Source: Geosiphon pyriformis uo1
Lineage: Eukaryota > Fungi > Glomeromycota
Reading direction: 5' to 3'
Assembly: GCA_016748015.1 (NCBI GenBank)
Contig: JAAOMT010000039.1
Location: 87,904 to 141,665, forward strand
Length of the DNA: 53,762 nt
Part shown: in pieces, positions 2,361-52,991 of the stretch
Position numbering within the stretch: the first letter of the stretch is position 1
Layout: every line of letters starts with the position of its first letter
Position numbers and translations under genes: made by a program
Notes under the pieces: generated by a model
Database searches by the model: none
Told to the model about the DNA's origin: nothing
What the model saw: only the letters and a program-made list of their open reading frames with translations

Positions 2361-3854
2361 TTAAAGTCTTCTGATTTGAAAAACTTCATACTCTTCGACT
2401 AAGAAGTCTACTTTTCCATTTCCTGAATTAGGCATTATCGCGTGCTCATATGATGATTCCTCTCGACAAGAACATCCAGGGTTATTTTGAAAATCATCAC
2501 TTCTCATTACAATACTATGCTCACCAAAATGAGGTCCACGCATTGGGCTATTAAAAGGTCCCTTTTCGTTAACAGATTTGCTAAGTTTAGCATTTTCAGC
2601 TTTGCCATCTCCAAGAGAAAATATAAAACTTCCTGTTCCATCTAAACATTTTATGCAAGAAGACCAAGATTGTGGGTTATACCCGCCGATCAGTTGACCA
2701 GTTTCTTTCACTTTGATAACACTAACTGTTGCTCCTTTATCATCACATAATCGATGAAAATCGGCTGGGGTAAATCCGTCTCGACTGCCTCGAAGTAACA
2801 AATCAAAGTTATTTCCAAGTTGGCTTTCAAAAGGAGTATTTTTATCTTTGCCCTGGATCCAGTGGTCAAGCTGCCTCACATTATGCAACTGAAGAAGCTT
2901 TGAACCAGTTGATCGGAATGGCCGAGCCTCAACAGACTTTTCATGACTCCCCGGTACTAGATAATGATGTAAAAGATCTTCATATAAAGTTCCGGGTAAA
3001 ATTCTCGCAAATGGTTTTACTTTGTGATAGAAGTCAACAGAAGATATGTGAAAGAACCGGATTAAAGGTAGAAGCTCCTCAATGGATTCCTTAAAGGCGT
3101 TAAAATTCTCATCTGTCCAGTTAAGAATCTCTTCTACCTTAATATTGTTACCCAATTTAGCAACTCCCCATTCCACAATCTTTTTCCATATTTCTATTTC
3201 TTCCATAATAAAGTCATCGTGGGACAAAATTGAGGAAAGAAAATTCTTACTTAAGGAGGTGAAATCTTGGGATCTGAAGATTATAGCTGGACTTTTAGCT
3301 GCTATTTGTGTGCAGAATTCTTGCAGCTTTTTGAACGAATCATGCATAAATGATATTTCATACAAAGAGGCAAAGTTTTCCTCTAGCTCTTTGGCATGAT
3401 TTTCAATTAGATAGCTTTCCAGGTGGTCAATAAGATTTTTCAAAGTGAGCTCGCCAGCAGCAACAAGCAATTCCAGGATTGTAAGTATTCCATGTTCTTC
3501 AAGAGAAATTTCGCCATTATAAATGTATCTATACAGAAAAGTAAAACAGGTGAATCAATTATATTAAATACTTTTAAAGGAAGCTAAATACACTTGCCTA
3601 AGAATCACCACAAAAATTCTGGGTGATATATTAGGTTTAGTTATGACAATGGTGTTATTATCTTTTTTAACCAAACCATTAGAGAATGCAGCAGCAAAAT
3701 ATTGTGATCTTGCTGCTAAAATTTGTGAATGAGCATGAAAGGTTTCAGCATTAGGCGTCTTGCCGATAATAATTCTAACATCAGACAAATTCTGACTATT
3801 GAATAAGCACCCAAAATCCTGAGATAAAGCTTGAAAGAGCTGTTGGGGTGCCAT
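2361..3854 (-). CDS. BTB/POZ-BACK-TLDc protein, copy 1 (474 aa); exons 3854-3598 and 3528-2361; GC-AG intron
   Basis: BTB motifs SDVRIIIG...FHAHSQILAARSQYF...KPNISP; splicing gives ILR/YIYNGEI. BACK motif EEIEIWKKIVEWG...LIRFF. TLDc motifs LLLRGSRDGF...FHRLCD...GGYNP...FIFS...GPHFG...VEEYEVF. Confidence 0.92.
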
Positions 3855-4229
3855 TTGTAAAATATACGAGCTTTCAAAGGATTGATAATTGTATATATTT
3901 AGATTAAGATATTTTTTGAGAATAAAATTACAGAGTTTTAGTATATATTTGTTTCAATATTTGATTTATTCAATAAACTACCATAAATTAATCATAAGTA
4001 TATATATGTATTATTTATTATTTATAAAAAGAATTTTTAGCTATTGTCAGAAACATTTAGGTTTCGTACGACAACAATAACTAAAATCTGTGAATTGGAT
4101 TTCATCATCATTAGGCGATTGATATACTAGTGTGATTCGTCAGTAGACAAAAGTTTATTAAACAAGTTAAAATTGTATTTTTATAATTTAAAAACCCCGT
4201 AATCTACACCTTTCATTCCAACTCTAATT

Positions 4230-4679
4230 ATGACCACTTCAAATAGCAAATTCGAATTTAAGGAAGTTCAAGGTGACCTTTTTGTTGACCCACTACTAAA
4301 TGATTCACTTGCGCATTGTGTTTCAGCTGATCTCGAAATGGGCAAAGGGATTGCCGCTACTTTCAAAGAAAAATTTCAAGGGATTCCCGAACTAAAATCT
4401 CAGGGCAAAAAGGTTGGGGAAGTGGCATATCTTAAACAAGATGGCCGATATATATTTTATATTATAACCAAAGAAAGGTATTACCATAAACCCACACGAG
4501 AAAATTTTGAGATAGCGTTAACGGACTTGAGACGCTTATGCGAAAAACTTGGGGTGAAAAGGTTAAGTATTCCTAGAATAGGGGCTGGTTTGGATAAGTT
4601 GCCCTTGGAATTTGTTCATGAAGTTATAGCAAAAGTATTTGAGGGGTGTGATTTGAAAATGACTATGTATTATTTGTGA
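4230..4679 (+). CDS. OARD1: Macrodomain ADP-ribose glycohydrolase, TARG1/OARD1 (Poa1p-like) family, 149 aa, intronless
   Basis: Motifs GDLF...SLAHCVSADLEMGKGIA, YIFYIITKERYYHKPT and LSIPRIGAGLDKL match TARG1, including the catalytic Lys (ITK) and Asp (GLD). Confidence 0.9.
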   Translation: MTTSNSKFEFKEVQGDLFVDPLLNDSLAHCVSADLEMGKGIAATFKEKFQGIPELKSQGKKVGEVAYLKQDGRYIFYIITKERYYHKPTRENFEIALTDLRRLCEKLGVKRLSIPRIGAGLDKLPLEFVHEVIAKVFEGCDLKMTMYYL

Positions 4680-5076
4680 ACAAACTTGAATCTAGTATGG
4701 TCAGAATATTGAATGGGAAAATTCAAAAACCATCTATATATTAATCGGAAGGAGTATTTTCATTCTGAATAATATAATAGAAATGCCTTGGATATAATAT
4801 CATGATCAAGGTCAAACAAGACGAAATTATTTTTAAAAATGAAACAATGTTTTTGTTTGTTAAAATATTCTAACCGTTTATTATCGAAAGGAAGTTTAAA
4901 GGACTTGAAAAAAATAAAATAATGTGGTCAAAAATTGTTTATAATCACCATATCTTTTTCGCTATTAAAATATACAATAAGCTCTCTAATTCAATTGGAT
5001 CAATATTTTTTGTTAGATTTTGTATGCTCAACATACTTTTGGCAAAAATTTGTCAATTCTATAAACCCCTAAAACC

Positions 5077-5367
5077 TCATGCCCATCCAGCACATTTTCG
5101 AGCAATATTAGACCCAAAGACTGTCACAGTTTCCCAAAATAGTATTAATTGAAAAATTGGTTTTTTTGCATTCCATTGAAACGTAGGATCCACAACTGTT
5201 CGCTTTCCAGGAAACGAAAATTTTTTTGGATTAACATTTTGATCTGTTAAACTTTCATTTGGAATCAGAAATTCAGACGGTATTCCAGGACGAGTTCGCA
5301 TACGGGCTCGGTTCCTTAGTCTGATTGCCAAAGCCATTGCTTTGATATCGGTGTGGAATTTTGTCAT
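5077..5367 (-). CDS. Hypothetical small protein (96 aa)
   Basis: ATG-initiated ORF with higher GC than its flanks; no recognisable domain. Confidence 0.35.
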   Translation of the reverse strand: MTKFHTDIKAMALAIRLRNRARMRTRPGIPSEFLIPNESLTDQNVNPKKFSFPGKRTVVDPTFQWNAKKPIFQLILFWETVTVFGSNIARKCAGWA

Positions 5368-8939: not shown

Positions 8940-9650
8940 TGCAAGAAAACCTTTATTACCTCAATATATCTAATTGAAACATCATACAAAAGAGCCAGAT
9001 GAAAACTTTGCCCCTTGGAATGAAACATTATTTATGCATGATTCGTTCAAAGACTACAAGAATTCTAGGCTCAAATAGTGACTGACAATCCAGCTTTAAT
9101 CTTAAATCCGAAGATTTTGTCTCCCTAAATAAAAGTTCTCTTTCTTCGATTTTATCCCGGGATAACCTTATCATGGAAGAAAAATGTGGGTGAAAATGGG
9201 GAGTTGCTAGATTGGATAAAAATATTAAGGTCTTAACTGGTCAGATAGAAATTTTGACGCCTTGAAGGTTAGTGTTATCAAAGTGAAAGAAACTGGTCAA
9301 CTGATTGGCGGGTATAACCCACAATATTGGCCTTCTTGCAATAAATTTTTAGATGGTAAATGAAGGTTTATTTTTGTCCTTGGACATAGTAAAGTTGAAA
9401 ATGATAAATTTGGGATATTTGTTAGCGGAAAGGGACTTTGTGATGGATTAAATTGTGGACTCGAATTTGGCCAGGATAGTATTAGAATAGAAATGATTAA
9501 TTTTCAAAATAGGGCCTGGATACCATTATCGAAGAATGCAACCTATGAGCACCTTGAAATGCCTAGATCAGAGAATCAAAAAGTAAACTTCTTGTCAAGG
9601 AGTCAAAAGTTTTTCAAGTTAGAAGCACAAAACTTAGTTTATATAATTCA
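8940..9650 (+). pseudogene. Degraded BACK-TLDc pseudogene with internal deletion
   Basis: Recognisable blocks GAAAACTTTGCC, TTTATGCATGATTCGTTCAA and GTTAGTGTTATCAAAGTGAAAGAAACTGGTCAACTGATTGGCGGGTATAACCCACAA. Multiple frameshifts and stops. BACK is fused directly to mid-TLDc at ~9268. Confidence 0.88.
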
Positions 9651-9727
9651 TTCAATTAAGTTTTTATATTTTCTAAAGTTTATATCCGTATTTTGGCAAT
9701 TTATACACTTGTAAGCTTTTCACTAAA

Positions 9728-10565: not shown

Positions 10566-11062
10566 ATTAATTCAAGTTTCAGAAAAAGTCGAATTATCCT
10601 AAAAATTTAAGAAAAGCTTGGAACCCTTACAAATCATATTTTCAATTTAAAAATTTCATTAAAAAAGATGCTTTTGATCTAGAACTAAAGTTCTAGCTTC
10701 TAAAAGCAAGTTTGTGCTTAAATTTTTACACTTATAAAAATTTATTTTTCAGTTTTTAGTTATCATCATGATTTTGAATATTTTAAATGTCGCCTGATTC
10801 AAAGTACGATTATTTAAAATTTAGAAATTTATTTTATAACCAGAAAAAATAAGTAGAAAATTTCAGTATATTTTTCATAGTATAAATTTTTTTGTTCAAT
10901 TGTATGTCCACTAAGAATTTGAAAATATTATATATTTTCATTTTAAAAATCAATATTTCCTAAAATTCTTTAGAAGCATGGAAATAAAATTTAAAATTTA
11001 TAAAAGCCTTCTTAAGTGCTCTTTAATTTCAAAAAAAGCCGGAGAAACTTAATAAAAAATGC
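10566..11062. repeat. ~490 bp direct repeat, copy 1 (partner 11882..12375, across the N gap)
   Basis: ATTAATTCAAGTTTCAGAAAAAGTCG... recurs at 11882 with only a few SNPs. Confidence 0.92.
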
Positions 11063-11064
11063 TA

Positions 11065-11861
11065 TATATTGTAATACCATTACCAATTTAAGCCATAATT
11101 TTTTTTATAATTACTTATAGTTATAATCTACAAATCAACATAAATCGCGTCCTTGTAAAACACAACAGTGGATTATACGCGTATATATAAAATATCAAAC
11201 ATTCTTGTCATGAAAAAATTTACCGCATCAAATGTGTCTTGGAAAAGAACTTTCTGAATACCAAAAAGGAGGGATTATTTCAGCAAAAAAATTAGGACAT
11301 ACAAACAGTGAGATTTCCACGACTATTGAATGTTCACGTTCTTCTGTAATACATGTATGAAGTCATACGAGCTAAAAAAACTTCCTAAAAAACGAACAGA
11401 CTGACCACAAATTCTTGACAAATGTGCACGTGAACAACTCAAATATTCAATAATGGAGAATAAAAAAACCCACCGCCAAACTCTTTCTCAAATACGATTG
11501 AATTTTATTAAAGATACCAACAAATCTATTTCTATACAAACTATTTGAAATGGATTAGCTTAAGAAGGACTTCACTCGTGCATTCCTCGTCTCAAGCCAT
11601 TAATTTCCAAATCAAATAAAGAAAAACGTTTACAATGGGCTCGTACTTATGAAAATTGGACAGTAGAAGATTTTAAACGAGTTGTTTGGTCAGATGAATC
11701 TACATATACACAATTAAGAACTACAGGATTTGGACGTGTATGGCGTAAACCTTCCAAAGAGTTTCATAAGGATTGTATTGCAGCCACAGTTAGAAAAAGC
11801 TTTGGTCGCATGTTTTGGGGATGTTTTTCATGGGTTGGTTTGGGTCTTTTAGTTCCTTTGG
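11065..11861 (+). mobile_element. Decayed Tc1/mariner DNA transposon, 5' part, truncated by the assembly gap
   Basis: Translation KPLISKSNKEKRLQWARTYENWTVEDFKRVVWSDESTY...VWRKP...MFWGCFSWVGLG includes the first catalytic D (WSDES). In-frame stops at 11402, 11546 and 11561. Begins after the TA at 11063-64. Confidence 0.9.
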
Positions 11862-11881
11862 NNNNNNNNNNNNNNNNNNNN
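11862..11881. other. Assembly gap (20 N)
   Basis: Run of n characters. Confidence 1.
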
Positions 11882-13510
11882 ATTAATTCAAGTTTCAGAA
11901 AAAGTCGAATTATCCTAAAAATTTAAGAAAAGCTTGGAACCCTTACAAATCATATTTTCAATTTAAAAATTTCATTAAAAAAGATGCTTTTGATCTAGAA
12001 CTAAAGTTCTAGCTTCTAAAAGCAAGTTTGTGCTTAAATTTTTACACTTATAAAAATTTATTTTTCAGTTTTTAGTTATCATCATGATTTTGAATATTTT
12101 AAATGTCGCCTGATTCGAAGTATGATTATTTAAAATTTAGAAATTTATTTTATAACCAGAAAAAATAAGTAGAAAATTTCAGTATATTTTTCATATTATA
12201 AATTTTTTTGTTCAATTGTATGTCCACTAAGAATTTGAAAATATTATATATTTTCCTTTTAAAAATCAATATTTCCTAAAAGTCTTTAGAAGCATGGAAA
12301 TAAAATTTAAAATTTATAAAAGCCTTCTTAAGTGCTCTTTAATTTCAAAAAAACCGGAGAATTTTAATAAAAAGCTAATTACTTGTCAATATAAGTAGCT
12401 TTGAAATATTAAATCTTTAACGACATTAAATATTTAGTCAATGAAATTTGTATTAATTGCTTTGGTAAATATATAATTATTTGGATCATGTTTCTCAATT
12501 TGAAGAAAAAGTAATTTTATTTTGTTTTCGAGGTAAATAATTTGGTTTTGCTTTCGAGATAAATAAGTTGAAATTGAAGAAATTACTCTTTTGTTTTAAT
12601 TTATACTGCCTAAATATTTTGCAATTAAAAAATGAATTTTTTTTTAATTAAACTTATCAATTTCAAGGACGAGAGAAAGAAACATGTATTATCTGTTCGT
12701 GTATCCAGGATGCCAGCGAAATTCTTGTAAAAACTGGGAGTTATCGAACTTACATGCTATGATTGTGGGAAACCATTTATTTACCTAAAAGTAAGTTTAT
12801 CTTATTTAATTGCTGTAGTTTTAAATGAAATAAATTTTTATTTCTCCAAATATTTTCTGCTTGTGTTAACAATAGAATGTCCATTCTAAACGATTTAATG
12901 ATATAATTTCCAGTGATAATGAAATTTGCGACTTTGGATTTGGACTTGAAAAGCTAAAGGCAATATTTCAATCATAAATTTAGTTATTCTACAGCTATCA
13001 GAATTATAATTATAACAAATTTTAGTTTCAAATATTTTGTTATTTTGCTTTACCATTTAACTCTCTAAATCAAAGATTTTAATTTTAATTAAGAATAAAA
13101 AACTTCCATTTAGAACCCAATCATAAAGCGTATTATATATTAATCTTTAATAGTTTTTCACTGTAATTTTTTTAAAATATATATATTCATAAAATTATTA
13201 ATTTTAAATAAATTTGATTTCTTTTTGATTTTAATATTATTAGTATTTGATAGAGAAAGATTTTAACTTTAAGTTATTAGAGTAAACCCATTTAATTTTT
13301 TAATAGCACATTACATATTTTTAAATTAAAATAATTTTAAAGTGAGCAAAAGATTTTTGCATTCAACTCAATTGGAATTGGGTGCACAATTTTACATTAG
13401 ACATGAAATAATACTTCTGTAAAGCATAAAGCAATAAGCTATAGAAGACTCTTTTCATTTAAACCTTAGAAAATATAAAACTTCAATTGATTGAATTATA
13501 TAAACTAAGT
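11882..13510. repeat. Duplicated intergenic block: direct-repeat partner of 10566..11062, paralogous to ~16200..17711, ~34440..35040 and ~37440..38100
   Basis: Shared blocks such as AGTGATAATGAAATTTGCGACTT (at ~12912, ~17130, ~38016) and ACTCAATTGGAATTGGGTGCAC (at ~13366, ~17555). Confidence 0.85.
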
Positions 13511-15004
13511 TTAATTTTTTCTGATTTGAAAAACTTCATACTCCTCGACAAAGAAGTCTACTAGTTTATTTTCTGAATCAGCCATTATCGCGCACTTATA
13601 TGATGAATCCTTTCCACAAGAGCATCCAGGGTTATTTTGAAAATCCTCACCTGTCATTACAATACTATACTCGCCAAATTCGGGTCCACGCGTTGGACTA
13701 TCAAAAGGTCCCTTTTCTTTAACAGATTTGCTAAGTTTAGCATTTTCAGCTTTGCCATCTCCAAGGGAAAATATAAAACTTCCTGTTCCATCTAAACATT
13801 TTATGCAAGAAGACCAAGATTGTGGGTTATACCCGCCGATCAGTTGACCAGTTTCTTTCACTTTGATAACACTAACTGTTGCTCCTTTATCATCACATAA
13901 TCGATGAAAATCGGCTGGGGTAAATCCGTCTCGACTGCCTCGAAGTAACAAATCAAAGTTATTTCCAAGTTGGCTTTCAAAAGGAGTATTTTTATCTTTG
14001 CCCTGGATCCAGTGGTCAAGCTGCCTCACATTACGCACCTGAAGAAGCTTTGAATCAGTTGATCGGAATGGCCGAGCCTCAACAGACTTTTCATGACTCC
14101 CCGGTACTAGATAATGATGTAAAAGATCTTCATATAAAGTTCCGGGTAAAATTCTCGCAAATGGTTTTACTTTGTGATTGAAGTCAACAGAAGATATGTG
14201 AAAGAACCGGATTAAAGGTAGAAATCCTTCAATTATTTCCTTTAAGGCGTCAAAATTCTCATCTGTCCAGTTAAGAATCTCTTCTACCTTAATATTGTTA
14301 CCCAATTTAGCAACTCCCCATTCCACAATCTTTTTCCATATTTCTATTTCTTCCATAATAAAGTCATCGTGGGACAAAATTGAGGAAAGAAAATTCTTAC
14401 TTAAGGAGGTGAAATCTTGAGATCTGAAGATTATAGCTGGACTTTTAGCTGCTATTTGTGTGCAGAATTCTTGCAGCTTTTTGAACGAATCATGCATAAA
14501 TGATATTTCATACAAAGAGGCAAAGTTTTCCTCTAGCTCTTTGGCATGATTTTCAATTAGATAGCTTTCCAGGTGGTCAAAAAGATTTTTCAAAAGGAGC
14601 TCATCAGCGATAATAAGCAATTCTAATATTATAGGTACTCCGTATTCCTTAAGAGATATTTCACCACTATACAAATATCTAGATAAAACAATAATCAAAT
14701 GTATGAATAAAATATTAGCAAGTATATTTTAAGCAAACTAAACTTACCGAAGTATCACTTCAAACATTTGTGGTGAAATATTAGGCTTAGAGAAGATAAT
14801 GGTGTTATTTTCTTTTTTAACCCAATTACTAGAGAGTGCTACAGCAAAATAGGAGGATCTTGCTGCTAAAATCGGCGAATGACCGTGAAAAGTTTTATTA
14901 TTAAGACCATCACCAACGATAATCTTAACATCAGAGAATATTTCATTATTCAATAAGGTCCCGAAATCGTGAGATAAAGCGTGGGAGAGTTGTTGAGACG
15001 TCAT
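13511..15004 (-). CDS. BTB/POZ-BACK-TLDc protein, copy 2 (474 aa); exons 15004-14748 and 14678-13511
   Basis: Same domain motifs; 69-nt GT-AG intron gives ILR/YLYSGEI; the frame is open to the stop. Confidence 0.92.
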
Positions 15005-17240
15005 GAATATCTAAGAAGCAAAATTCTTGGGTTTTTATAATTCAGCAGCTAAAAGGTAGTTACGTTACGCCCATTTGTTTATGTTTACCTTGTGAAAAGA
15101 TCTGTGAGTTACTAGTAGTGGAATTTATGATCTGAATTAATCATTATAGCAGTTAACTCATTTTCTTGCTGACAGAAAAAACATGATTGCTAAATATGCA
15201 ATCACATAATACGTGACTGGTTATAGAAATTTATTGTAGGGGTGTATATAAAATGCAAACAAGAATCCGATTTACCTAAAAAATCGGTAGCTGTGTTATC
15301 TAATAAAATTTTTTAACTTGTTAAAGCTCTAACGTGACCTAAATTATTTTAAAAAATTTAATTAGACTAGTTCAATTGCTTAGAATTTGAAAAGCTAAAT
15401 TTTAAAATCCCTTTTCCTTCATTTTTTGCAAATTTAACATAAAGAAATTTATAAATTATCGATTTTAAAAAATAATATAACGTTTAATTAAATTTTAATT
15501 TAATACAATAGATTTTTTAAAGCTTTAATATTTGAAACAATTCAAAAAAAAAAGATTGTATTTTCTACTTTCTACTTTCTAAATAAAAAAAATTATATTT
15601 TTTTGTTAAGAATTTTGAAAATTAAATATCTGAGCTTCTTTTGCGATAAATTAGAGATTTTTTAAGATATAAAAAATCAGATAAAGTAAAATCTCGAGTG
15701 AATATTAATTCTTGTTATTTAATTAAGGATTGCAATAATATTTCATCATCCTATTTTCAAATGTGTACTTGCATCTTTCTCTGGCTCAACAGATATTCCG
15801 CAATAAACATTAATTTCAACTTTAGTTTCTTAAATAAATGACACCTGATCTTTTTATAGCTTAAACTATATTATTTTAATCCAGTGATTGGGGAAATTTC
15901 ATTTCTTAATAGTGCAATGAGTTTATAATAGCTACCCCTTTACTAATATAACAGATAATAAATCAAAATTCATGAATTTCTTGATTTAAGAAAAGTTTCA
16001 AAAATTGCGCTGAAATAATAGCATATAATTTTCGTTTGTTCACCTGTGGAAAATTGGTATGCATACATATAGCCATACTAATTCAATCTTAAATCTTAAA
16101 ATCCCAAAATAGAAATCTTTTTATACTGGAAAGAATAGTGATATTTCAATAAATGGTTTTTTTAAAGCAAAACCGATAGTAATTGTTTTTAATTGGAAAA
16201 TATAAGAGTCGATATCATTAGCTTCTAAAATGAAGTTTATATTTAAATTAAATTTTTTATTTTTTGGTCTTAGATATCATCATGATGTTGAATCTTTTAA
16301 ATCTCGCCTGATTCAAAGTATTATTATTTCAAATTTAAAAAATTATATTCCAACTAGAAAACTTTGGTACATTTTCGTAGTACAATTTTTCTTATTTAAT
16401 TTATATCTGACTAAGAATTCCAGAATATTATGTATCTTCTTTAAAAGAAATGCCTATTTAAAAGCTAAAGATAAATATTGCTATCGGATGGACCTAAAAT
16501 TCTTTAGAAACATCGAAATAAAAATTTTAATTTATAAAAGCATTCTGGGGTACTCTTTGATTTCAGAAAAGGCCGAAACTCAATAAAAAGCTGACTGCTT
16601 ATCGATGTGAGAAGTTTTAAAATATTAAATCTTTAAGATATTCTTTTCCCACCACATTAAATATTCAGTCAATGATATTTGTCTTAATTGCTTCGGTAAT
16701 TATATAATTATGTAGTTTATTTTTCTTAACTAAAGAAATTTTATTTTATTTTTTAGGTGAATATGTTGGATTGAAGAATTTACTCCTTTGTTTTACTTTA
16801 TACTGCTTTTTGCAATTAAAAAAATGAAGTTTTTTTCTAATTATTTTATTTAAACTTATCAATTTCAAGGACAAGAGAAAAAACATGTATTATGTGTTTC
16901 GCGTATCCTAGATGCCAGCTAAATTCTTGTAAAAATGAAATTATGTAGAGTTATCGAGGCTAATCGTTATGATTATGGAAAAACTATTTGTTTATCTAAA
17001 AGCGAGTCATCCTATTTAAAGGCTGCAGTTTCAAATGAAATAAAATTTTTATTTCTCTAAATCCTTTTTGTTTGTGATAATAGTACAATGTCCGCTCTGA
17101 TCGGTTTAATGATGATTCATATAATTACTAGTGATAATGAAATTTGCGACTTGGGATTTGGGACTAGAAAAACTAAAGGCTGGGAACATTTCAATCATAA
17201 ATTTGGTTATCCTACAGCCATCAGAATTATAAATATAATT
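15005..17240. repeat. Upstream intergenic block paralogous to 36501..38105
   Basis: Long collinear similarity, e.g. GATAAAGTAAAATCTCGAGTGAATATTAATTCTTG at ~15680 and ~36951. Confidence 0.85.
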
Positions 17241-17711
17241 ATAAACCAATTTTCAATATCAAACATATTTGTCAATTCTTATTTTAGACACTTGATTTTG
17301 AGCATGCTCACTTTACCATTTAACTCTCGAATTCAAAATTTTTTACCTTAATAAAGAATGAAAAAATTTCCATTTAAAACCCATGCATGTTTGATCTTCA
17401 ATAGTTTTTCAAAATAAACTGTTCTTATTTAAAATAAACATTTGAAAAGCTTAATCTTTTTATTAAGTTATCGATTGAGAAAAGTCTTAGCATTAAGTTA
17501 TTAGTAAAACAATCTTGCTAATATCTTGTGAAACTGATCAATATTTAGGACTCGACTCAATTGGAATTGGGTGCACCCATTTTACATTAGACATGAAATA
17601 ATACTTAAGTGTTTTTGCTGTAAAGCATAAAGCAATAAGCTATAGAAGACTCTTTTCATATAAACCTTAAAAAATATAAAAACTCAATTGATTGAATTAT
17701 ATAAACTAAGT

Positions 17712-19205
17712 TTAATTTTTTCTGATTTGAAAAACTTCATATTCCTCGACAAAGAAATCTACTTGTTTATTTTCTGAATCAGCCATTATCGCGCACTTAT
17801 ATGATGAATCCTTTCCACAAGAGCATCCAGGGTTATTTTGAAAATCTTCACCTGTCATTACAATACTATACTCACCAAATTCGGGTCCACGCATTGGGCT
17901 ATCATAAGGTCCCTTTTCGTTAACAGATTTGCTAAGTTTAGCATTTTCAGCTTTGCCATCTCCAAGGGAAAATATAAAACTTCCCTTTCCATCTAAACAT
18001 TTTTCGCAAGAAGACCAAGATTGTGGGTTATACCCACCGATCAATTGACCAGTTTCTTTCACTTTGATAACACTAACTGTTGCTCCTTTATCATCACATA
18101 ATCGATGAAAATCGTATGGGGTAAATCCGTCTCGACTGCCTCGAAGTAACAAATCAAAGTTATTTCCAAATTGGCTTTCAAAAGGAGCATTTTTATCTTT
18201 GCCCTGGATCCAGTGGTCAAGCTGCCTCACATTATGCAACTGTAGAAGCTTTGAACCAGTTGATCGGAATGGCCGAGCCTCAACACACTTTTCATGACTC
18301 CCCGGTACTAGATAATGATGTAAAAGATCTTCATATAAAGTTCCGGGTAAAATTCTCGCAAATGGTTTTACTTTGTGATAGAAGTCAACAGAAGATATGT
18401 GAAAGAACCGGATTAAAGGTAGAAATCCTTCAATTATTTCCTTAAAGGCGTTAAAATTCTCATCTGTCCAGTTAAGAATCTCTTCTACCTTAATATTGTT
18501 ACCCAATTTAGCAACTCCCCATTCCACAATCTTTTTCCATATTTCTATTTCTTCCATAATAAAGTCATCGTGGGACAAAATTGAGGAAAGAAAATTCTTA
18601 CTTAAGGAGGTGAAATCTTGGGATCTGAAGATTATAGCTGGACTTTTAGCTGCTATTTGTGTGCAGAATTCTTGCAGCTTTTTGAACGAATCATGCATAA
18701 ATGATATTTCATACAAAGAGGCAAAGTTTTCCTCTAGCTCTTTGGCATGATTTTCAATTAGATAGCTTTCCAGGTGGTCAATAAGATTTTTCAAAGTGAG
18801 CTCGCCAGCAGCAACAAGCAATTCCAGGATTGTAAGTATTCCATGTTCTTCAAGAGAAATTTCGCCATTATAAATGTATCTATACAGAAAAGTAAAACAG
18901 GTGAATCAATTATATTAAATACTTTTAAAGGAAACTAAATACACTTGCCTAAGAATCACCTCAAAAATTCTGGGTAATATATTAGGCTTAGTTATGACAA
19001 TGGTGTTATTATCTTTTTTAACCAAACCATTAGAGAGTGCAGCAGCAAAATATTGTGATCTTGCTGCTAAAATTTGTGAATGGGCATGAAAGGTTCTAGC
19101 ATTAGGCGCCTTGCCGATGATAATTCTAACATCAGACAAATTCCGACTATTCAATAAGCTCCCGAAATCATGAGATAAAGCTTGAAAGAGCTGTTGGGGT
19201 GCCAT
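17712..19205 (-). CDS. BTB/POZ-BACK-TLDc protein, copy 3 (474 aa); exons 19205-18949 and 18879-17712; GC-AG intron
   Basis: ATG at 19205 (MAPQQLFQ); donor AG|GCAAGT; full TLDc motifs; intact frame. Confidence 0.92.
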
Positions 19206-19795
19206 TGGTAGGATATACAAAGTTTCAAACTACTAAGCTCAAAAAAACTAGAGTTTTATACTGTGGATTTTTTAATAAACTAGAGTTTAAATATATATGA
19301 CGACTTATAATTAACCTTTTTTTTCTTTTTAACTCTACTACTTTGATATATTATGATCTATGCCCACTTGATTATCACCATGTTTTTCAAACTACCTTTT
19401 TCAAATTCTTTATATTCTTCAAAAAATTATTAAGGATATAAAATATAGAAAAAATAGTCGATAATTATTCTTTTTTTTTAAGAAAAATCAAAAATAATAA
19501 CCTTCGTTTATATGCTCCCAGTCCATTTCAAAATTCTTTTATTTAATGCGTAAGTCAGCAATAACATTTGTGATTTGATTTTTAGGAAGATGAACTATAA
19601 TTAAGTAATATCACTCATTAATATTGCTATATACTTGAATCGACTTCTTAAGGTAAATAAATTCTTCACCCAAGAATTTTTGTTAATATAAATAGCCAGA
19701 TCTATTAAATAAATGTTTCACCAGAAATTGTATGATTTTTAAGTGTTCTAAAATTCCAACTTTCTTTTGTGAAGGTAGAATCAACACAAAGGAGG

Positions 19796-20604
19796 TCACA
19801 GAGATGATTTATGAAGAAGTGCCTCAATATCTTTGGCAATATCTTTGGGCTTTGTAGAAAATATCAATATTAGTCACACAGTTTATTTTTAAGAAGAGAT
19901 AATAACAACTTTCTTTCAAAAATATACCTCTGTTGTACTTGCATATCGATTTACCACTTGACCATTCTGATCAACTAAAAACTTTTCAAAATTCCATTTG
20001 ATTCTTGCCATGCCAAGTATTCCGGCCTTCTGACTCTTTAAGTAATTATATACAGGAGATGCATTATCACCGTTGACATCAATTTTAGCCATTATTTTAA
20101 AGGTGACGCCATAATTAACTTTACAAAATTCCTCGATTGCTAAAAAATTGTGCAAAAATAATGTTGAAATTAACACATCATTAAGCGATTTGAACATATC
20201 CATTCCATACCGTTCTGGTCATCGAATTCCTGATTTTTAAATTGTCCGCATGGGAACCCCAACACTATCAATCCTTGGTCTTCATATTTTTTATGCAGCT
20301 GTTCTAGACCGGCAAATTGTGGGGTAAACCCGCACTTGGATGCTGTATTAACAATCAAAGAAACTTTTCCTTTTAATTGAGAAAAAGGGTAAGGTTTTTG
20401 GTTACCATCCATTGCTTCCAAATCGTAGAAAGATTTGGCGAAAGCCGCCGTATCTGTCATGTTTTCTACTTGATTATTATGAGTGAAATAATCAAACGAA
20501 AAAATATCTGTAACTTTAATTAAATTGAATAAATTTGAAAGTTTGTAAAAAATTGAAAGCAAAAGAACAATAATTCCAATTTTAAGGAGGGTTTGATTTG
20601 TCAT
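19796..20604 (-). CDS. GPX: Cys-type (thioredoxin-dependent, Gpx3/Hyr1-like) glutathione peroxidase; exons 20604 (or 20460)-20211, 20139-19928, 19849-19796
   Basis: VNTASKCGFTPQ, GFPCGQFKNQE, EEFCKVNYG (resolving Cys) and IKWNFEKFLVD; spliced C-terminus PKDIAKDIEALLHKSSL*. Confidence 0.93.
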
Positions 20605-23702: not shown

Positions 23703-25610
<1,908 letters not shown>

Positions 25611-35041: not shown

Positions 35042-36500
35042 TCAATTGATTGAATCATATAAACTAAGTCTGATTTGAAAAACTTCATACTCCTCGACAA
35101 AGAAGTCTACTTTTTCAGTTTCTGAATTAGGCATTATCGCGTGCTCATATGATGAATCCTTTCGACAGGAGCATCCAGGGCTATTTTGAAAATCTTCACT
35201 GTTCATTACAATACTATGCTCACCAAATTCGGGTCCACGCATTGGGTCATTATAAGGTCCCTTTTCACTAACAAACTTGCTAAGTTTAGTATTTTCAGCT
35301 TTGCCATCTCCAAGGGAAAATATAAAACTTCCCTTTCCATTTAACCACATTCCACGAGAAGACCAAGATTGTGGGTTATACCCGCCGATCAGTTGACCAG
35401 TTTCTTTCACTTTGATAACACTAACTGTTGCTCCTTTATCATCACATAATCGATGAAAATCGGCTGGGGTAAATCCGTCTCGACTGCCTCGAAGTAACAA
35501 ATCAAAGTTATTTCCAAGTTGGCTTTCAAAAGGAGCATTTTTATCTTTGCCCTGGATCCAGTGGTCAAGCTGCCTCACATTATGCAACTGAAGAAGCTTT
35601 GAACCAGTTGATCGGAATGGCCGAGCCTCAACAGACTTTTCATGACTCCCCGGTACTAGATAATGATGTAAAAGATCTTCATATAAAGTTCCGGGTAAAA
35701 TTCTCGCAAATGGTTTTACTTTGTGATAGAAGTCAACAGAAGATATGTGAAAGAACCGGATTAAAGGTAGAAGCTCCTCAATGGATTCCTTAAAGGCGTT
35801 AAAATTCTCATCTGTCCAGTTAAGAATCTCTTCTACCTTAATATTGTTACCCAATTTAGCAACTCCCCATTCCACAATCTTTTTCCATATTTCTATTTCA
35901 TCCATAATAAAGTCATCGTGGGACAAAATTGAGGAAAGAAAATTCTTACTTAAGGAGGTGAAATCTTGGGATCTGAAGATTATAGCTGGACTTTTAGCTG
36001 CTATTTGTGTGCAGAATTCTTGCAGCTTTTTGAACGAATTATGCATAAATGATATTTCATGCAAAGAGGCAAAGTTTTCCTCTAGCTCTTTGTGATTTTT
36101 AATTAGATAGCTTTCCAGGTGGTTAATTAGGTACTCCGTATTCCTTAAGAGATATTTCACCACTATACAAATATCTAGATAAAACAATAATAAAATGTAT
36201 GAATAAAATATTAGCAAGTATATTTTAAGCAAACTAAACTTACTGAAGTATCACCTCAAACATTTGTGGTGAAATATTAGGCTTAGAGAAGATAATGGTT
36301 TTATTTTCTCTTTTAACCCAATTACTAGAGAGTGCTACAGCAAAATAGAAGGATCTTGCTGCTAAAATCGGCGAATGACCGTGAAAAGTTTTATTATTAA
36401 GACCATCACCAACGATAATCTTAACATCAGAGAATATTTCATTATTCAATAAGCTCGTTAAATCGTGAGATAAAGCGTGGGAGAGTTGTTGAGACGCCAT
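35042..36500 (-). pseudogene. BTB-BACK-TLDc copy 5, frameshifted; exons 36500-36244 and 36174-35042
   Basis: After correct splicing it reads YLYSGEISLKEYGVPN* (TAA at 36125-36123) because of a net 50-nt deletion relative to copy 2. The downstream BACK-TLDc frame is open. A 10-nt deletion removes the normal stop. Confidence 0.85.
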
Positions 36501-41603: not shown

Positions 41604-42794
41604 ATGCTTCGACGAAAAATTTCAACAATATATACCGTCAAGAAAAGAACACGTCCTGAAATACCAACCATGACGAATGGAGTTATACTACCCCCAAACA
41701 ATTTTGAATTACACGACCCTTTTTTGATTTGCTGTGAGGATTGGTTTCATTATCCAGGTGGTTTTGATTTTCATCCACATTGCGGTTTCGAGGTAAATAT
41801 ATACTTGAATTTTTTATGGATTTTTCTCGATAAAATATACTTTTGCAGCATTTTTATCTTTTTGATGTTTTTTTTCTTTTTCAGACTATCACATTAGTAT
41901 TTGACGGATTATTGAATCATCAAGATTCTAAAGGAAATATAACTATTATTGGGCAAAGTAAGTTATAAGACTTTCTTTTTAATAATAATATTAAAAAACT
42001 TGATTTTCGAAAATTTATTCAAATCATTATCAAACATTTTCTCTTGCAAATTTCTTATTGATATTTTAAAGAGTAAGTAAAACTTTTCATTTCTTAAAAT
42101 TACCATTAACTCTAAAAATTAATTAAAACTGACCAATTATTTTTTAATCAATCTCAGTGAAGCTCAATGGATTAAAACGGGACGAGGTCTCCTTCACAAA
42201 GAAATTCCAAATAATAAAGAAACTAAAGTCCATCTAATGCAACTATGGCTTAACTTACCCCGTTCGAACAAAGGCGACGAAGCAACCTATCAAAATTTAC
42301 CTTCCTCAAAGATTCCAATACGTAATATCCCTTCCTTGAAACCACAAAACAGGGAAAAAAACGAAAATTCAGCAACGATACGAATCATATCAGGAAAATC
42401 AGGTGATTTTGTTGGACCAGCAAAGAATGTAGTGCCTGTTAAAGCACTTGATATCACAATTTTTGAACCAGATTACACATTGGAAGAAGATATTCCTGCA
42501 AACTATAACATGTTTATCTTTGTACTTGAAGGAAAAGGTATTTTTGGAGATGAAGAAATAAACTTAGAAGCTGGTAAGGTTTTGATTAGTGCTCCAGTTT
42601 CAGAGAGTGAGGAATTGAGCTCAGTGTTAACAATTAGAAATAATTCAAAAGACTCCCAATTGAGAGTTATTTTGTTTGCCGGGAAACCGATCAAAGAGCC
42701 AGTAGTGCAACATGGACCGTTTATTGGAAACAATTGGGTAGATATTTTAAAGGCTAAGCAAAATTTTATGTTGGGTAAATTTGCAGGACTATAA
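41604..42794 (+). CDS. Pirin (cupin bicupin) ~299 aa; exons 41604-41792, 41885-41957, putative 1-nt exon 42072, 42158-42794
   Basis: DPFL...GGFDFHPHCGFE/TIT...HQDSKGN, EAQWIKTGRGLLHKE, MQLWLNLP and GKPIKEPVVQHGPF; the metal ligands H, H, H and E are present. Confidence 0.9.
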
Positions 42795-43140: not shown

Positions 43141-43209
43141 ATTCCACTAATGGTGACTCACGAATCCTACCCAAAGTAAACACAAAAAAGTTGGCGCTGA
43201 ATTATAAAA
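43141..43209 (+). promoter_or_regulatory. Putative promoter module shared by type-B BTB-TLDc genes: TGACTCA (43154), GTAAACA (43176), TATAAAA (43203)
   Basis: The same ordered motifs, some as variants, occur upstream of the copies starting at 15004, 36500 and 52991. Confidence 0.45.
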
Positions 43210-43237
43210 ACTCAAGAATTGTGATTTTTGGAGATTC

Positions 43238-44744
43238 ATGGCGCCCCAACGACTCACCAACGCTTTATCTCGCGACTTCGGGACCTTATTAAATAATGAA
43301 ATATTTTCTGATGTTAAGATTATCGTTGGTGATGGTCTTAATACTAAAACTTTTCATGCTCACTCGCAGATTTTAGCAGCAAGATCCTCCTATTTTGCTG
43401 TAGCACTCTCTAGTAATTGGGTTAAAAGAGAAAATAACACCATTATCTTCTCTAAGCCTAATATTTCACCACAAATGTTTGAGGTGATACTTCGGTAAGT
43501 TTAGTTTGCTTAAAATATACTTGCTAATATTTTATTTATATTTGTTTATTGGTTTATCTAGATACATATATAGTGGTGAAATATTGCTTGACGAATATGA
43601 AGTACCTATAATTGTAGAATTGCTTGTTGCCGCCGATGTGCTTATTATGGAAGATCTAATCAGCCACCTTGAAGACTATCTAATTAAACAACATGAAGAA
43701 GAGTTGAAAGAAAACTTTTTCACTTTACGTGAAACATCCAATAGGCATGGATCTTTTAAAAAGCTCCAAGATTTTTTTACCGACATACCTGCTAGAAATC
43801 CAGCTGCAATTTTTAATTCAAAAGAGTTCACTACCCTCAACAAAATTGCTTTAGCTTCAATTCTATGCAGAGATGACCTTAATTTAGAAGAATCTCAAAT
43901 ATGGGAAAAGATTATAGAATGGGGAGTTGCCAAATCGGGTAGCAATATTAAAGCAGAGGAACTTCTAAATTGGACAAATGAAAACTTTGAGGCCTTTAAG
44001 GGATCAATTGAAGAGCTTCTACCTTTAATACGGTTCTTTCATATATCCTCAGCTGTATTCTATCATAAAGTAAAGCCATTTGGAAGAATTTTACCTAGAA
44101 CTTTATATGAAGATCTTTTACATCACTATCTAGTACCGGGGAGTCAGCAAAAATCTGTAGACGCCCAGCCATTTCGCCTTCAACTAGATATAGAATCGAA
44201 GCTTCTTTATTTGCATAATGTGAGGCAGCTTGATCACTGGGTTCAGGACAAAGATAACAATACTCCTTTTCAAAACCAACTTGGAAATAGTTTTGACTTG
44301 TTACTTCGAGGCAGTCGAGATGGATTTACCCCAGACGATTTTCATCGATTATGCGATTATGAATATGCAACAATTATTGTTATCAAAGTGAAAGAAACTG
44401 GTCAACTGATTGGTGGATATAGTCAAGATTCTTGGACTTCTTGCAATGGTTGGATATATGATACAAAAAGTTTTATTTTTTCTCTCGGAGATGGCAAAGC
44501 TGAAAATGCTAAACTTAGCAAATCAATTAACGGACTGGGACCTTTTGATAGCTCAGAATTTGGACCCTATTTCGGTATGCGTAATATTGTAATAGGCGGT
44601 AGTGATTTTCAAAATAGTCCTGGATGCTCTTGTCAAAAGGATTCATCATATGAGCATGCAATAATGCCTGGTTCTGAAAATGAACGAGTGTGCTTCTTTG
44701 TTGAGGAGTATGAAGTTTTTAAAATCAGCAAAATAGGTTATTGA
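43238..44744 (+). CDS. BTB/POZ-BACK-TLDc protein, copy 6 (479 aa); exons 43238-43494 and 43562-44744
   Basis: Intact BTB, BACK and TLDc motifs; 67-nt GT-AG intron. Confidence 0.92.
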
Positions 44745-46104: not shown

Positions 46105-46126
46105 TAATAATAATAATAATAATATA

Positions 46127-46165
<39 letters not shown>
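46105..46165. repeat. (TAA)n microsatellite, interrupted
   Basis: Read directly. Confidence 0.9.
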
Positions 46166-49776: not shown

Positions 49777-50419
49777 TTTTTTCAAAAGAAAATTAAAAGT
49801 GAAAAAAAGAATCTCGTGCTGAAATGATTGCAGATCTATACCTTGAAAATTTTTTGCCTATCAATAAAAAACACATATTGAACGTGTTTCGGATTAATGC
49901 ACGTGATAATTTGGTTCGCATTTTTGATAAAAAATTATAATTATCTCTGTTCAATATAAATAAAGCATAACATCTAAACCAGAAAGTTGGGTGATTTTTG
50001 GGTGGCATGATTTAAATCATGAGCACATTAATCAGAAGCTGACTATTACATGTAATATTGTGTATTCCTTTGTCATCAGATTCTGATAAATCTGCTCATT
50101 CATTTAATTGGCGATAGGTCAACAGGAAGGTCATCTGAGATTTCTGTTGCCATTCGAAGTGGCCATAATTAGAGACAATGATTTTTTGACCATTGTAAAT
50201 CGAAAAGGGTTTAATTTGCAAAACTGACCCTGGGAGTTTCTTAGTCACCGACTGACGTATCACACTAACGCATCAATCATCTGATGACAATAGAGTTCAT
50301 AAGACTCAAAACAAGTTTTAGGCTGGAACCAATTCTAAGGCATAATCTAAAAATTGTAATTTATTTACATTAAGAAGTCAAATGGAGCGATATTGTCGAA
50401 TTAGTTAACTTTAATGAAT

Positions 50420-51403
50420 GAGATTACTATCTAATTGAAAATAGTGCAAAAAATCTAGAGGACAACTTTGTCTCTTTGGATGAAGCATCATTTATACATG
50501 ATACATTTAAAAAGTTACAAGAGTTCTGCACCCAAAAAGTAACTATAAATCCATCCAATCCCAAGTTTGCTTTCCTCGATTTTAACCTTGTTATGGAAGA
50601 AATAGAAATATGGGAAAAAATTGTGGAATAGGGAGTTGTTGAATTAGATAAAAATATTAAGTTTGAAGAAATTGTTAAATGGAAAGATGAAAATTTTGAT
50701 GCCTTTAAGGAATCAATTGAACAGCTTTTACTTATCTTCTGTTGACTTCTATCACAAAGTAAAACACTTTGCAAGAATTTTACCTGAAACTTTATATGAA
50801 GATCTTTTACTTCATTATCTAGTAGCAAAAAGTTATGAAAAATCTGTTGACGCTCAGCCGTTCCGATCATTGGTTCAAAGCTTTATCAATTGCAAAACAT
50901 GAGGCAGCTTGATCACTGGATTCACGACAAATATAAAAATGCTCCTTTTGAAAGCCAACTGGGAAACAACTTTGATTTGTTACTTCGAGGCAGTCAAGAC
51001 AGATTTACTCCAGCAGATTTTCATCGATTATGCGATTAAAGAGGAGCCATAATTAATGTTATCAAAGTGAAAGAAACTGGTGGGTATAGCCCAGATCGTT
51101 TGTATTCTTGCGGTGAATGGTTAGTAAAAAAGGAAGTTTTATTTTTTCCCTTGGAGATGGTGAAGCTGAAAATTCTAAACTTGGCAAATTTGTTAGTGGA
51201 GACCTTGTGATATCCCAAAGCATAGACCTGAATTTGGCAACCATATAATAATGAGCAGTAGTGATTTTTAAAATAGTCCTGGATGCTCTTGTCAAAAGGA
51301 TTCATCATATGAGCATGCAATAATGCCTGGTTTTGAAAATGAACGAGTGTCCTTCTTTGTTGAGAAGTATGAAATTTTTAGAATCAGATAAATAGACTAT
51401 TGA
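50420..51403 (+). pseudogene. BACK-TLDc pseudogene lacking the BTB exon
   Basis: Recognisable blocks (YLIENSAKNLEDNF, MEEIEIWEKIVE*, LLLRGSQD, CSCQKDSSYEHAIMPG) with stops and frameshifts; the 3' end and flank resemble copy 6. Confidence 0.9.
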
Positions 51404-52029
51404 GTTTTATACAATTCATTTAGCATTTTATAAGCTATATATTAAATGGGGCTCCTTATTATTGTAATTTGCATTAGTAGAGTCATCTATAGCTTATTGA
51501 TTTAAATCCCAAAATAAAGATATACAATTGAATATAAAATATTATTTCACTTATCTTTATTTTACTTTGTGAAGTCTGCTATTAAAAACCTATCTTAAAA
51601 CTTATATATAATCTTTAAATTTCATAAATTTATACAATTGGCTCAATAATATTAAAAAAGTTCCTACTTCTGTAAAATATAGTTTTAAATCACTATAAAG
51701 AATGAGAGTTATTATTCGAGTTTTTACTCAGTAATGAGTGATTCTCAAGCCAAATGTAACTCGAAATTTCAATTTGTTCATTCTTCTCCTTTGAATTTAA
51801 ATTGACTAAGAATCAGAATATTTTTCTATTGAGCTTGCTCATATTCATCAGAAAATACAAATCAAAATAGTTTTCTGACATTCGTGATATGATATTTGTT
51901 ATTCTATTCCTCCAAAACTTTTTTGATATCATGAATTACAATTTAATGAACCAAATTCAAGGATGCTTTAAATAAAACATCTTTTTATCATTTATATTAA
52001 TATTCTACTCAAAAAGAAGAAATTTATTT

Positions 52030-52991
52030 CTGAATCCAGTGGTCAAGCTAGCCTCATGTTATGCAATTCAAGAAGCTTTGAATCAATTGGACGGAATGGC
52101 TGAGCGTCAACAGACTTATGATGACTTCCGGAACTATATAATGATGTAAAAGATCTTCATAAAAAGTTCTAGGTAGAACTCTCCCAAATGGCTTTACTTA
52201 ATGAGAGAATACAGCTGACAATATATGAAAGAACCGAATTAATGGTAGAAGCTCTTCAATTGTCCAATTTAGTATTTCCTCTGCTTTAATATTGCTACCC
52301 GATTTGGCAACTCCCCATTCTATAATCTTTTCCCATATTTGAAATTCTTCTAAATTAAGGTCATCTCTGCATAGAATTGAAGCTAAAGCACTTTAGTTGC
52401 AGGAGGTGAACTCTTTTGAATTAAAGATTACAGCTAGATTTCTAGCAGCTAGTCGGTAAAAAATGTTGGAACTTTTTAAAAGATTCATGTCTATTGGATG
52501 TTTCACGTAAAGTAAAAAAGTTTTCTTTCAACTCTTCTTCATGTTGTTTAATTAGATAGTCTTCAAGGTGGCTAATTAGATCTTCCATAATAAGCTCATC
52601 GGCGGCAACAAGCAATTCTACAACTATAGGTACTTCATATTCGTCAAGCAATATTTCACCACTATATATGTATCTAGATAAACCAATAAACAAATATAAA
52701 TAAAATGTTAAAAATAGATTAAAGCAAACTAAACTCACCGAATTATCACCTCAAAAATTTGGGGTGAAATATTGGGCTTAGAGAAGATGATGGTGTTATT
52801 TTCTCTTTTAGCCCAATTACTAGAGAGCGCTACAGCAAAATACGAGGATCTTGCTAAAATTGGCGAATGACTGTGAAAAGTTTTAGTATTAGAACCATCA
52901 CCGACGATAATCCTAACATCTACGAATATTCGTTATTCAATAAGGTCCCGAAGTCTCGAGATAAAGCGTGGATGAATTGTTGGGACGCCAT
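52030..52991 (-). pseudogene. BTB-BACK pseudogene, close paralog of copy 6, truncated before TLDc
   Basis: ATG at 52991. Exon 2 is near-identical to 43562 onward (YIYSGEILLDEYEVP). Frameshifts and a deletion near 52260; similarity ends at DHWIQ (~52030). Confidence 0.9.

Follow-up and report, generated by a model that had tools for sequence, protein, structure and literature searches.

In a stretch of 53,762 nucleotides (nt) of the genome of Geosiphon pyriformis uo1 (contig JAAOMT010000039.1, referred to as C483, of 220,616 bp; positions 87904-141665, hereafter the window), we found nine homologous places of a gene family that joins BTB, BACK and TLDc domains, and the closest of these copies are mosaics of one another. 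The places were detected by tblastn with the exon-2 frame of copy c2 as query and are called, in their order along the window, c1, psi and c2 to c8 (Table 1). Beyond the window, this contig carries two further close copies: c0 (003546) is found about 31 kb upstream and c10 (003571) about 24 kb downstream. We consider it quite probable that these copies belong to a large tandem array of two-exon genes with birth-and-death turnover, whose paralogues exchange sequence by non-allelic homologous recombination and whose proteins are probable Cullin-3 (Cul3) adaptors. The exchange, by gene conversion and/or unequal crossover, is visible in three layers. In the first, a 5' module has been swapped between two diverged lineages; it takes in the proximal flank, exon 1 and the intron and reaches ~50-100 nt into exon 2 (approximately BTB residues 1-110). 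In the second, the core of c0, c1, c2, c3 and c5, which encodes BACK and the N-terminal part of TLDc, has been homogenised, with a synonymous divergence of 0-0.07 against flanks of the duplication unit that are only 75-88% alike. In the third, old variants have been reassorted by short tracts of 13 to ~300 nt within the C-terminal half of TLDc. The proteins would act as dimeric Cul3 substrate adaptors, with TLDc binding the target where other adaptors have Kelch or MATH.

Expansions of BTB/POZ genes have long been noted in arbuscular mycorrhizal (AM) fungal genomes and remain unexplained. The array shows the evolution of one such subfamily at nucleotide resolution, and the steps that can be seen are duplication, exchange of 5' modules between lineages, homogenisation of the scaffold and a reshuffled, hypervariable TLDc end. 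It also gives evidence for active non-allelic recombination in a lineage that has long been discussed as asexual.

Relationships between copies change along the gene

We aligned c1, c2, c3, c5 and c6 and scored, among the first four, the sites that split them two against two (quartet-informative sites). Columns 137-611 run from the 5' flank through exon 1 and the intron to 47 nt inside exon 2, and 108 of their 109 informative sites pair c1 with c3 and c2 with c5. No informative site among these four copies was found in columns 612-1008 (about 400 nt). In columns 1009-1021, seven sites pair c1 with c5 and c2 with c3 (ESIEELLP/EIIEGFLP in the proteins), five sites in columns 1267-1550 pair c1 with c2 and c3 with c5 (NTPF/NAPF and GTGS/GKGS), and the 11 sites of columns 1552-1690 go back to c1 with c5 and c2 with c3 (SSYEHAIMPNS/SSYKCAIMADS). 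All three possible pairings had been claimed at these places in a first-pass annotation of the window, and they are present in the translations as well as in the DNA alignment.

The same picture emerges from identity levels. Exon 1 is 94.6% identical between c1 and c3 and 96.1% between c2 and c5, and only 74-76% between the two types, which we call a-type (c1) and b-type (c2, c5), while in columns 664-1000 the four copies are 97.6-100% identical. That c6 joins a c2-type BTB exon to a different BACK was also recognized early and is correct: c6 shares 92-93% of exon 1 with c2 and c5 and 71% of the BACK region. The nearly identical central part had been estimated at ~700 nt; it exists, but it extends over ~600 nt at 97-100% (columns 664-1260 minus the 13-nt block of columns 1009-1021) and continues at 94-100% to about column 1550. 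The clearest mosaic is c3. Its 5' part is c1-like down to ~18438, the 13-nt block (18437-18425) is c2-like, the sites in 18188-17905 are common to c5, and 17903-17765 together with the downstream flank are c2-like again.

Both variants of the 13-nt block are found in copies on other contigs, which indicates that old variants moved between copies and that the block did not arise by fresh multi-base mutation. In addition, the non-coding parts (5' flank, intron and 3' flank) show the same partitions as the coding ones, so that selection on the protein, or convergent protein evolution, is not their cause. A history with no exchange at all, in which duplicates diverge independently and acquire common sites by parallel mutation or convergent selection, could account for one detail: at the switch between columns 1550 and 1552 all four combinations occur within 3 nt, and recurrent mutation could yield them. 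However, the 108 concordant sites in a row span the intron and flanks, the blocks of 7 and 11 sites are contiguous, and synonymous divergence along one and the same gene steps from ~0.63 between BTB types to 0-0.07 in BACK and then to 0.10-0.19 in the last 100 codons. The permutation and approximately unbiased (AU) tests described below agree on exchange. A history without exchange is contradicted by these data, and we give it practically no weight.

Recombination tests and conflicting trees

A PHI-type permutation test was significant for the whole gene (p=2e-4) and for the part after the main breakpoint (p=1.6e-3). A Sawyer-type test (statistic SSCF) on the 3' part of c0, c1, c2, c3 and c5 gave p=2e-4, and over-long shared tracts were detected for c1-c2 (~215 nt), c1-c5 (~300 nt, p=2e-4) and c2-c5, each with p<=8e-4. 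Maximum likelihood trees were built separately for the 5' module and for the rest of the gene from 30 family copies, 24 of them further members fetched from the genome. In the 5' tree, c1 and c3 group with copies of contigs C436 and C453 (ultrafast bootstrap, UFboot, 100), and c2, c5 and c0 group with c6 and c10 (99). In the 3' tree, c0, c1, c2, c3 and c5 form a clade (UFboot 100), and the c6-c10 pair (100) falls in a distant clade. AU tests reject forcing each data set onto the grouping of the other (p=1e-86, 7e-6 and 1e-42).

Gene conversion or unequal crossover between paralogues, as proposed in the first-pass annotation, is therefore backed by PHI and Sawyer-type tests, conflicting trees and AU tests alike; the recombination tests and per-domain trees that it had named as a check come out significant and, for 5' against 3', incongruent at 99-100% support. 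Sequence exchange between the paralogues is statistically strong. Also, one copy on another contig (L007, C436:187100-188950) is a hybrid too, its 5' module grouping with c2/c6-type copies and its 3' part being sister to the c0-c5 clade, which implies that module exchange is not limited to this array.

Units and history of the exchange

The main breakpoint does not coincide with an exon or domain border; it falls within exon 2, where the last BTB helices are encoded. Junctions are found ~50-100 nt into exon 2 and their positions differ between c0, c2 and c5. A swap of the "BTB exon" as a module had been suggested; the 5' swap is real, but the unit also takes in flank and intron and extends over ~50-100 nt of exon 2, and its junctions are not the same from copy to copy. 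Such differing junctions within coding sequence fit homology-driven crossover or conversion and not exon shuffling. Exon shuffling at the intron was considered as a candidate and rejected, since exon 1 and the intron move together and the junctions are inside exon 2, at different places in c0, c2 and c5.

Copies c2 and c3 belong to a tandem duplication unit (14995-12010 versus 19196-16219, blastn). Their flanks share 62-88% per 150-nt window (mostly 75-88%), with indels, whereas the 3' gene body reaches 95-99%, which indicates that the c2/c3 gene was homogenised after the duplication. Among c1, c2 and c3, the synonymous divergence (dS) in BACK is 0.009-0.036. Copies c2 and c5 have ~1.7 kb of upstream flank in common. 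With outgroups, the a-type 5' module goes with a c1-lineage core in copies on other contigs, and the b-type goes with the c6/c10 core, the exception being L007, which combines a b-type 5' module with a c1 core as c2 does. At least two module exchanges are needed. With outgroups, c6 and c10 look unrecombined and c2, c5 and c0 look like hybrids; otherwise c1 and c3 would have acquired their 5' end.

Exchange had been put forward as a source of combinatorial adaptors. Variants are indeed reassorted, but much of the exchange homogenises (core 97-100% against flanks 75-88%), and homogenising exchange is concerted evolution, not diversification. The further proposal that pseudogenes act as sequence donors does not hold for the decayed copies: the identity of psi, c7 and c8 to other copies is no higher than 77-87%, and they have no high-identity tract with the intact ones. 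Among the damaged copies, tracts in common with c1 and c2 are seen in the disabled c5 alone, which may have given or received them.

Assembly and the possibility of artefacts

This DNA is present in three public runs, all from a single sample on which the assembly was probably based, and their Logan unitigs were mapped on 13400-19300. The spacer is covered by a single-copy unitig of 1524 nt with a depth of 91.5, and copy-specific unitigs have depths of 86-101 (c2-specific, 91-94), that is, single-copy depth. As copy-specific depth equals that of the single-copy spacer, the copies are not collapsed. The longest exact runs shared by two copies measure 496 nt (c1-c3), 363 nt (c1-c5) and 267 nt (c1-c2), and the others are shorter than 180 nt (139 nt for c3-c5). 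The idea that c1-c5 are alleles or haplotigs was rejected, given their different flanks, the 75-88% flank identity with indels, and the single-copy unitig depth.

An assembly chimera, in which reads were mis-threaded through near-identical paralogues, would produce mosaics that are absent from the genome. In favour of it, the public runs yield only short unitigs within the genes, c1 shares its two long identical runs with c3 and c5, and a scaffold gap sits in repeated DNA beside a 98.4% repeat. However, swapping the 3' parts of c1 and c3, or of c1 and c5, via these runs does not undo the mosaic, as each of the two 5' types is then still found with both kinds of TLDc end. Removal of the conflict needs a swap between c3 and c5, whose common run is the short one, or between c1 and c2, whose run begins after the first conflicting block, so that a swap there leaves a mosaic. 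One partition switch occurs between sites 2 nt apart, within a single k-mer. The c2-like 3' end of c3 continues into a c2-like flank, under the 1524-nt single-copy unitig, which reaches to 65 nt from the stop codon. Furthermore, copy-specific unitigs are at single-copy depth, and a 5'/3' conflict of the same kind is seen in c0 and c10, which lie outside the window, and in L007 of contig C436. In this sense, we regard an assembly chimera as very improbable and keep exchange between paralogues as the explanation of the mosaics.

The assembly gap itself is outside every copy. The transposase frame 11564-11860 at its left runs open into the Ns. This cut frame on the left and a repeat on the right indicate that the two sides are not continuous and that nothing is in frame across the gap, where more than 20 nt are likely missing. 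Two overlapping contigs that differ by a transposon insertion (perhaps variation between nuclei) may have been joined here, or a recent local duplication may be present; the 98.4% repeat might be of allelic or haplotig origin.

Putative Cul3 adaptors with a TLDc domain

Full-length protein searches were done with the database proteins (P0001, P0002 etc.), and joined coding sequences were used for codon counts and for checks against P0001 and P0026. The full-length proteins match Pfam PF00651, PF07707 and PF07534: BTB (PF00651) has E values of 2e-17 to 2e-20 in c1, c0, c6 and c4, BACK is above the cutoff, and TLD (PF07534) has E values of 1e-11 to 6e-15. For c1, the values are 2.4e-17 (BTB), 9.7e-8 (BACK) and 2.9e-12 (TLD), and exon 2 of c2 carries BACK and TLD. 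A profile of 51 members searched against the PDB recovered KBTBD2, gigaxonin, KLHL3, KLHL11, KEAP1 and SPOP (E 6e-14 to 1e-9) over BTB and the 3-box/BACK, with alignment to KBTBD2, gigaxonin, KLHL3 and KLHL11 through query positions 4-212. In KLHL11, Cul3 contacts are made by the alpha3-beta4 loop and the 3-box groove (PMC3597819), and we follow the definition of the 3-box given in that paper.

An AlphaFold2 model of c1 has a mean predicted local distance difference test score (pLDDT) of 84, with helices at 118-278. Foldseek matched it to the BTB-BACK of KLHL11 (template modelling score, TM, 0.63) and to KBTBD2-CUL3 complexes, and its C-terminal part to the TLDc of NCOA7, OXR2 and TBC1D24 (TM 0.65-0.79) and to mEAK7 chains on the V-ATPase (TM 0.33-0.37). 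The first identification of the copies as BTB plus BACK plus TLDc agrees with Pfam and with these fold matches (KLHL11/KBTBD2 on one side, NCOA7/OXR2/mEAK7 TLDc on the other). Judging from profile and fold, Cul3 binding by the family proteins is likely.

Several observations weigh against an exchanging array of Cul3 adaptors. Unitigs in the genes are only 100-300 nt long, and linkage across the identical runs of c1-c3 and c1-c5 is not readable from them. Copy c1, and psi with it, is linked to c2-c8 by scaffolding only; the recombination tests are independent of this link. Trees and alignments are compatible with more than one direction and number of exchange events. RNA runs were looked for among public data and none was found; the splice models are predicted from sequence, and expression of the copies is presumed. 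In the proteins, the adaptor loop of c1 reads GLVK (P0001 residues 59-63), compared with GLSE in KBTBD2 and DLAE in BTBD6, so the hydrophobic residue (L/W) is kept and Glu is replaced by Lys; the family consensus is NWxK, and NWVK also occurs. The hydrophobic position would be that of KLHL11 Phe-130 and SPOP Met-233, and the conserved Glu two residues further on may matter as a Cul3 contact. If so, the Lys, which reverses the charge there, could weaken or alter Cul3 binding.

Variation, selection and a possible recognition repertoire

The ratio of nonsynonymous to synonymous differences per site (pN/pS) was computed family-wide in codon windows over 25 intact copies. It stays at 0.1-0.7 over most of the protein, rises to 0.94 in codons 371-385 and to 1.0-1.7 in codons 391-420, the only window (~30 codons) to reach such values, and remains at 0.6-0.8 up to codon 445. 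In the AlphaFold2 model the variable stretches are loops in the C-terminal half of TLDc. A conserved island (codons 389-407, ~57 nt) lies between two hypervariable TLDc patches, with a third-position pairwise identity of 0.92 against a mean of 0.73 and a pS of 0.10-0.15. The pN/pS peak is partly inflated because pS is unusually low at the island. The island may serve as an anchor or hotspot of conversion, or it may be an element that acts at the RNA or DNA level. Third-position conservation is also seen, more weakly, in another island at codons 198-210. Among the five close copies, no region has a dN/dS clearly above 1, and the C-terminal 100 codons of TLDc give 0.27-1.10. The pattern of variation fits a variable recognition tip, and positive selection is not proven.

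These data bear on selected diversification, which extends the array of exchanging paralogues and does not exclude it. Recombination would be favoured for the new combinations of BTB type and TLDc tip that it generates, and the family would serve as a Cul3 receptor repertoire for surveillance or non-self recognition, directed for example at endobacteria, Nostoc as the partner, viruses or foreign nuclei; the conserved island would then be a homology anchor. The expansion is lineage-specific (the top ~70 matches are all from G. pyriformis), and numerous pseudogenes point to birth-and-death turnover. The pN peak and the two windows of high pN/pS map to predicted TLDc loops, short tracts reassort variants in exactly that half of TLDc, and the island stands between the variable patches. 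There is also a published analogy in the fast-evolving F-box and MATH-BTB families, for which a part in pathogen defence has been put forward on the basis of indirect evidence (PMC1866355). On the other hand, dN/dS among the five close copies is compatible with relaxed constraint, the pN/pS peak owes part of its height to low pS, and most of the exchange homogenises. We see selected diversification as possible but rather doubtful, and an immune-like role is unproven.

A bolder form of the same idea is that the BTB-BACK-TLDc family of Geosiphon, and perhaps of Glomeromycotina, constitutes a germline-encoded Cul3 receptor repertoire reshuffled by recombination, in which TLDc loop patches recognise changing non-self proteins and the island and the core act as homology anchors, so that the variable cassettes stay exchangeable. 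We consider this improbable. If it were true, the TLDc patches would have as targets non-self proteins of endobacteria, of the cyanobiont, of viruses or of foreign nuclei. The family would then correspond, in a fungus, to the diversified F-box/MATH-BTB or NLR arrays, and TLDc would be a variable recognition domain of a new kind. In any case, the family offers a concrete and testable way to ask if Cul3 adaptors serve these fungi in the recognition of variable targets.

Comparison with known systems

The array of exchanging paralogues has parallels in the MATH-BTB families of nematodes and grasses, Cul3 adaptors that expanded in particular lineages and whose substrate domain evolves fast. In both, purifying selection acts on the BTB scaffold while the C-terminal binding domain varies, and both show tandem arrays, many pseudogenes and birth-and-death turnover. 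Further details of those expansions are said to have been worked out by Thomas in 2006 and Gingerich in 2007. The variable domain is TLDc behind BACK in our case and MATH before BTB in theirs, the host belongs to Glomeromycotina, and we document the swap of the 5' module and the homogenised core down to the nucleotide. As for the MATH-BTB family, its link to pathogen defence is an indirect hypothesis (PMC1866355).

The BTB-BACK-Kelch/KBTBD adaptors (KLHL11, KLHL3, KBTBD2, KEAP1 and gigaxonin) are homologous by profile and fold in BTB and the 3-box/BACK, but the Geosiphon proteins have no Kelch propeller and their loop is GLVK or NWVK compared with GLSE in KBTBD2. The C-terminal domain matches Pfam TLD and the solved folds of TLDc proteins (OXR1/OXR2, NCOA7, TBC1D24 and mEAK7). 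Known TLDc proteins are few per genome and conserved, and several have been solved on the V-ATPase (entry titles 7une, 7u8o and 7uzg), whereas the Geosiphon TLDc is fused to BTB-BACK, ~100-fold multiplied and hypervariable in two loop regions. As the TLDc proteins studied so far are conserved V-ATPase partners, the question is raised whether TLDc may be a variable recognition domain too.

In tandem arrays such as globins, MHC/KIR and plant NLR clusters, concerted evolution and mosaic paralogues are standard. The Geosiphon array resembles them in its homogenised core beside divergent flanks, its hybrid-gene junctions in coding sequence and its short tracts in the variable part. The mechanism is the same and ordinary for tandem gene families, so the surprise is limited; only the gene family and the organism are new. 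In AM fungi, BTB/POZ, Sel1, kinase and Kelch families are high-copy, often tandem and strain-variable (PMC8647823; PMC9453076), and assembly statistics and a k-mer binning approach are given in PMC9453076. Our literature search returned no paper that names a TLDc subfamily in AM fungi or describes exchange between its copies.

Gene copies, family size and neighbouring genes

The window is AT-rich (GC 21-36%). It had been described as holding nine genes; the nine homologous places stand, but five of them are intact (c1, c2, c3, c4 and c6, with open two-exon models), one is disabled (c5) and three are decayed (psi, c7 and c8, with stops in every frame and 76-87% identity to their best relatives). 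The coordinates of the copies and of the other features are collected in Table 1.

Table 1. Positions in the window of the BTB-BACK-TLDc copies and of the features associated with their exchange and with the assembly gap
Feature	Position	Strand	Description
c1	2361-3854	-	intact, G9A89_003553, 476 aa; exon 1 3854-3592, intron 3591-3529, exon 2 3528-2361
psi	8967-9685	+	decayed; BACK piece and TLDc end, numerous stops and frameshifts (tblastn and blastn)
493-nt repeat	10566-11058	.	recurs at 11882-12373, right of the gap, 98.4% over 493 nt (blastn)
Tc1/mariner-type transposase remnant	11214-11860	+	Pfam HTH_Tnp_Tc3_2 1.2e-8 (11564-11860); HTH_Tnp_Tc3_1 weak, 0.0067 (11214-11357)
Assembly gap (N run)	11862-11881	.	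1.6 kb from the nearest copy, c2 (stop codon)
c2 downstream flank	12010-13452	-	homologous to c3 downstream flank 16219-17653; part of the c2/c3 tandem duplication unit
c2	13511-15004	-	intact, 474 aa (GT-AG model); exon 1 15004-14748, intron 14747-14679, exon 2 14678-13511
Conserved island	13715-13771	-	given for c2; homologous place in every copy
Main junction in c2	14581-14632	-	upstream b-type (c5/c0/c10-like), downstream shared core 97-100% to c1/c3/c5
c3	17712-19205	-	intact, 476 aa by c1-type model
c4	26834-28337	-	intact but distant, G9A89_003561, 478 aa, 44% identity to c2
c5	35042-36500	-	disabled, G9A89_003563
c6	43238-44744	+	intact, G9A89_003565, 479 aa; exon 1 43238-43494, intron 43495-43561, exon 2 43562-44744
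c7	50410-51418	+	decayed, exon 1 absent, numerous stops; best match c10, 80%
c8	52030-53032	-	decayed, truncated: exon 1, intron and BACK region; best matches c10 87%, c6 85%; stops in all frames

Copy c1 combines an a-type 5' module with an x-type TLDc end, c2 a b-type module with a y-type end, and c5 a b-type module with an x-type end. In c6 the b-type module precedes a BACK-TLDc of a different lineage (71-84%), and c4 takes no part in the exchanges. The spliced translations of c1 and c6 are identical to the database proteins P0001 and P0026, and both genes have GT-AG introns of 63-67 nt. By tblastn and blastn, psi shows 76-77% identity to the intact copies and no high-identity tract. In c5, exon 2 has lost 53 nt near its start, 50 nt in one deletion (between 36128 and 36127) and 3 nt in another, which causes a frameshift in BTB, and a 10-nt deletion removes the stop codon. 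The public model of c5 (452 aa) skips the damage by means of an enlarged intron and keeps Pfam BTB positions 3-69 of 110. It is probably a pseudogene annotated as a gene, whose product would be devoid of the last BTB helices.

At least 14 family copies occur on this contig, and a six-frame search of the genome gave 123 matches, among them at least 90 exon-2 loci, a lower bound that agrees with the family expansion noted at first. The top ~70 protein matches have 54-88% identity, while those from other Glomeromycotina have no more than 44%; the architecture is present in Rhizophagus, Gigaspora, Acaulospora and Ambispora (37-44%) and is mainly found in Mucoromycota clusters and one cnidarian cluster. 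The Geosiphon copies are a lineage-specific burst.

Pfam searches of the other open frames 16230-16586, 30589-30939, 50427-50870 and 11405-11545 gave no domain. Unrelated genes are interspersed between the copies, with Macro, glutathione peroxidase, Sel1, FGGY kinase C-terminal and pirin C-terminal domains by Pfam (4230-4679, 20170-20604, 21253-21966, 24837-25610 and 42237-42794), so that the array is not a pure tandem block. Additionally, c1 (3591-3597) and c3 (18942-18948) have GC (GCAAGT) at the place where the GT donor of the c2 type aligns. The public-type model of c1 and c3 uses a GT donor six bases downstream of this GC, which adds two residues (RQV versus R) at the BTB exon junction.

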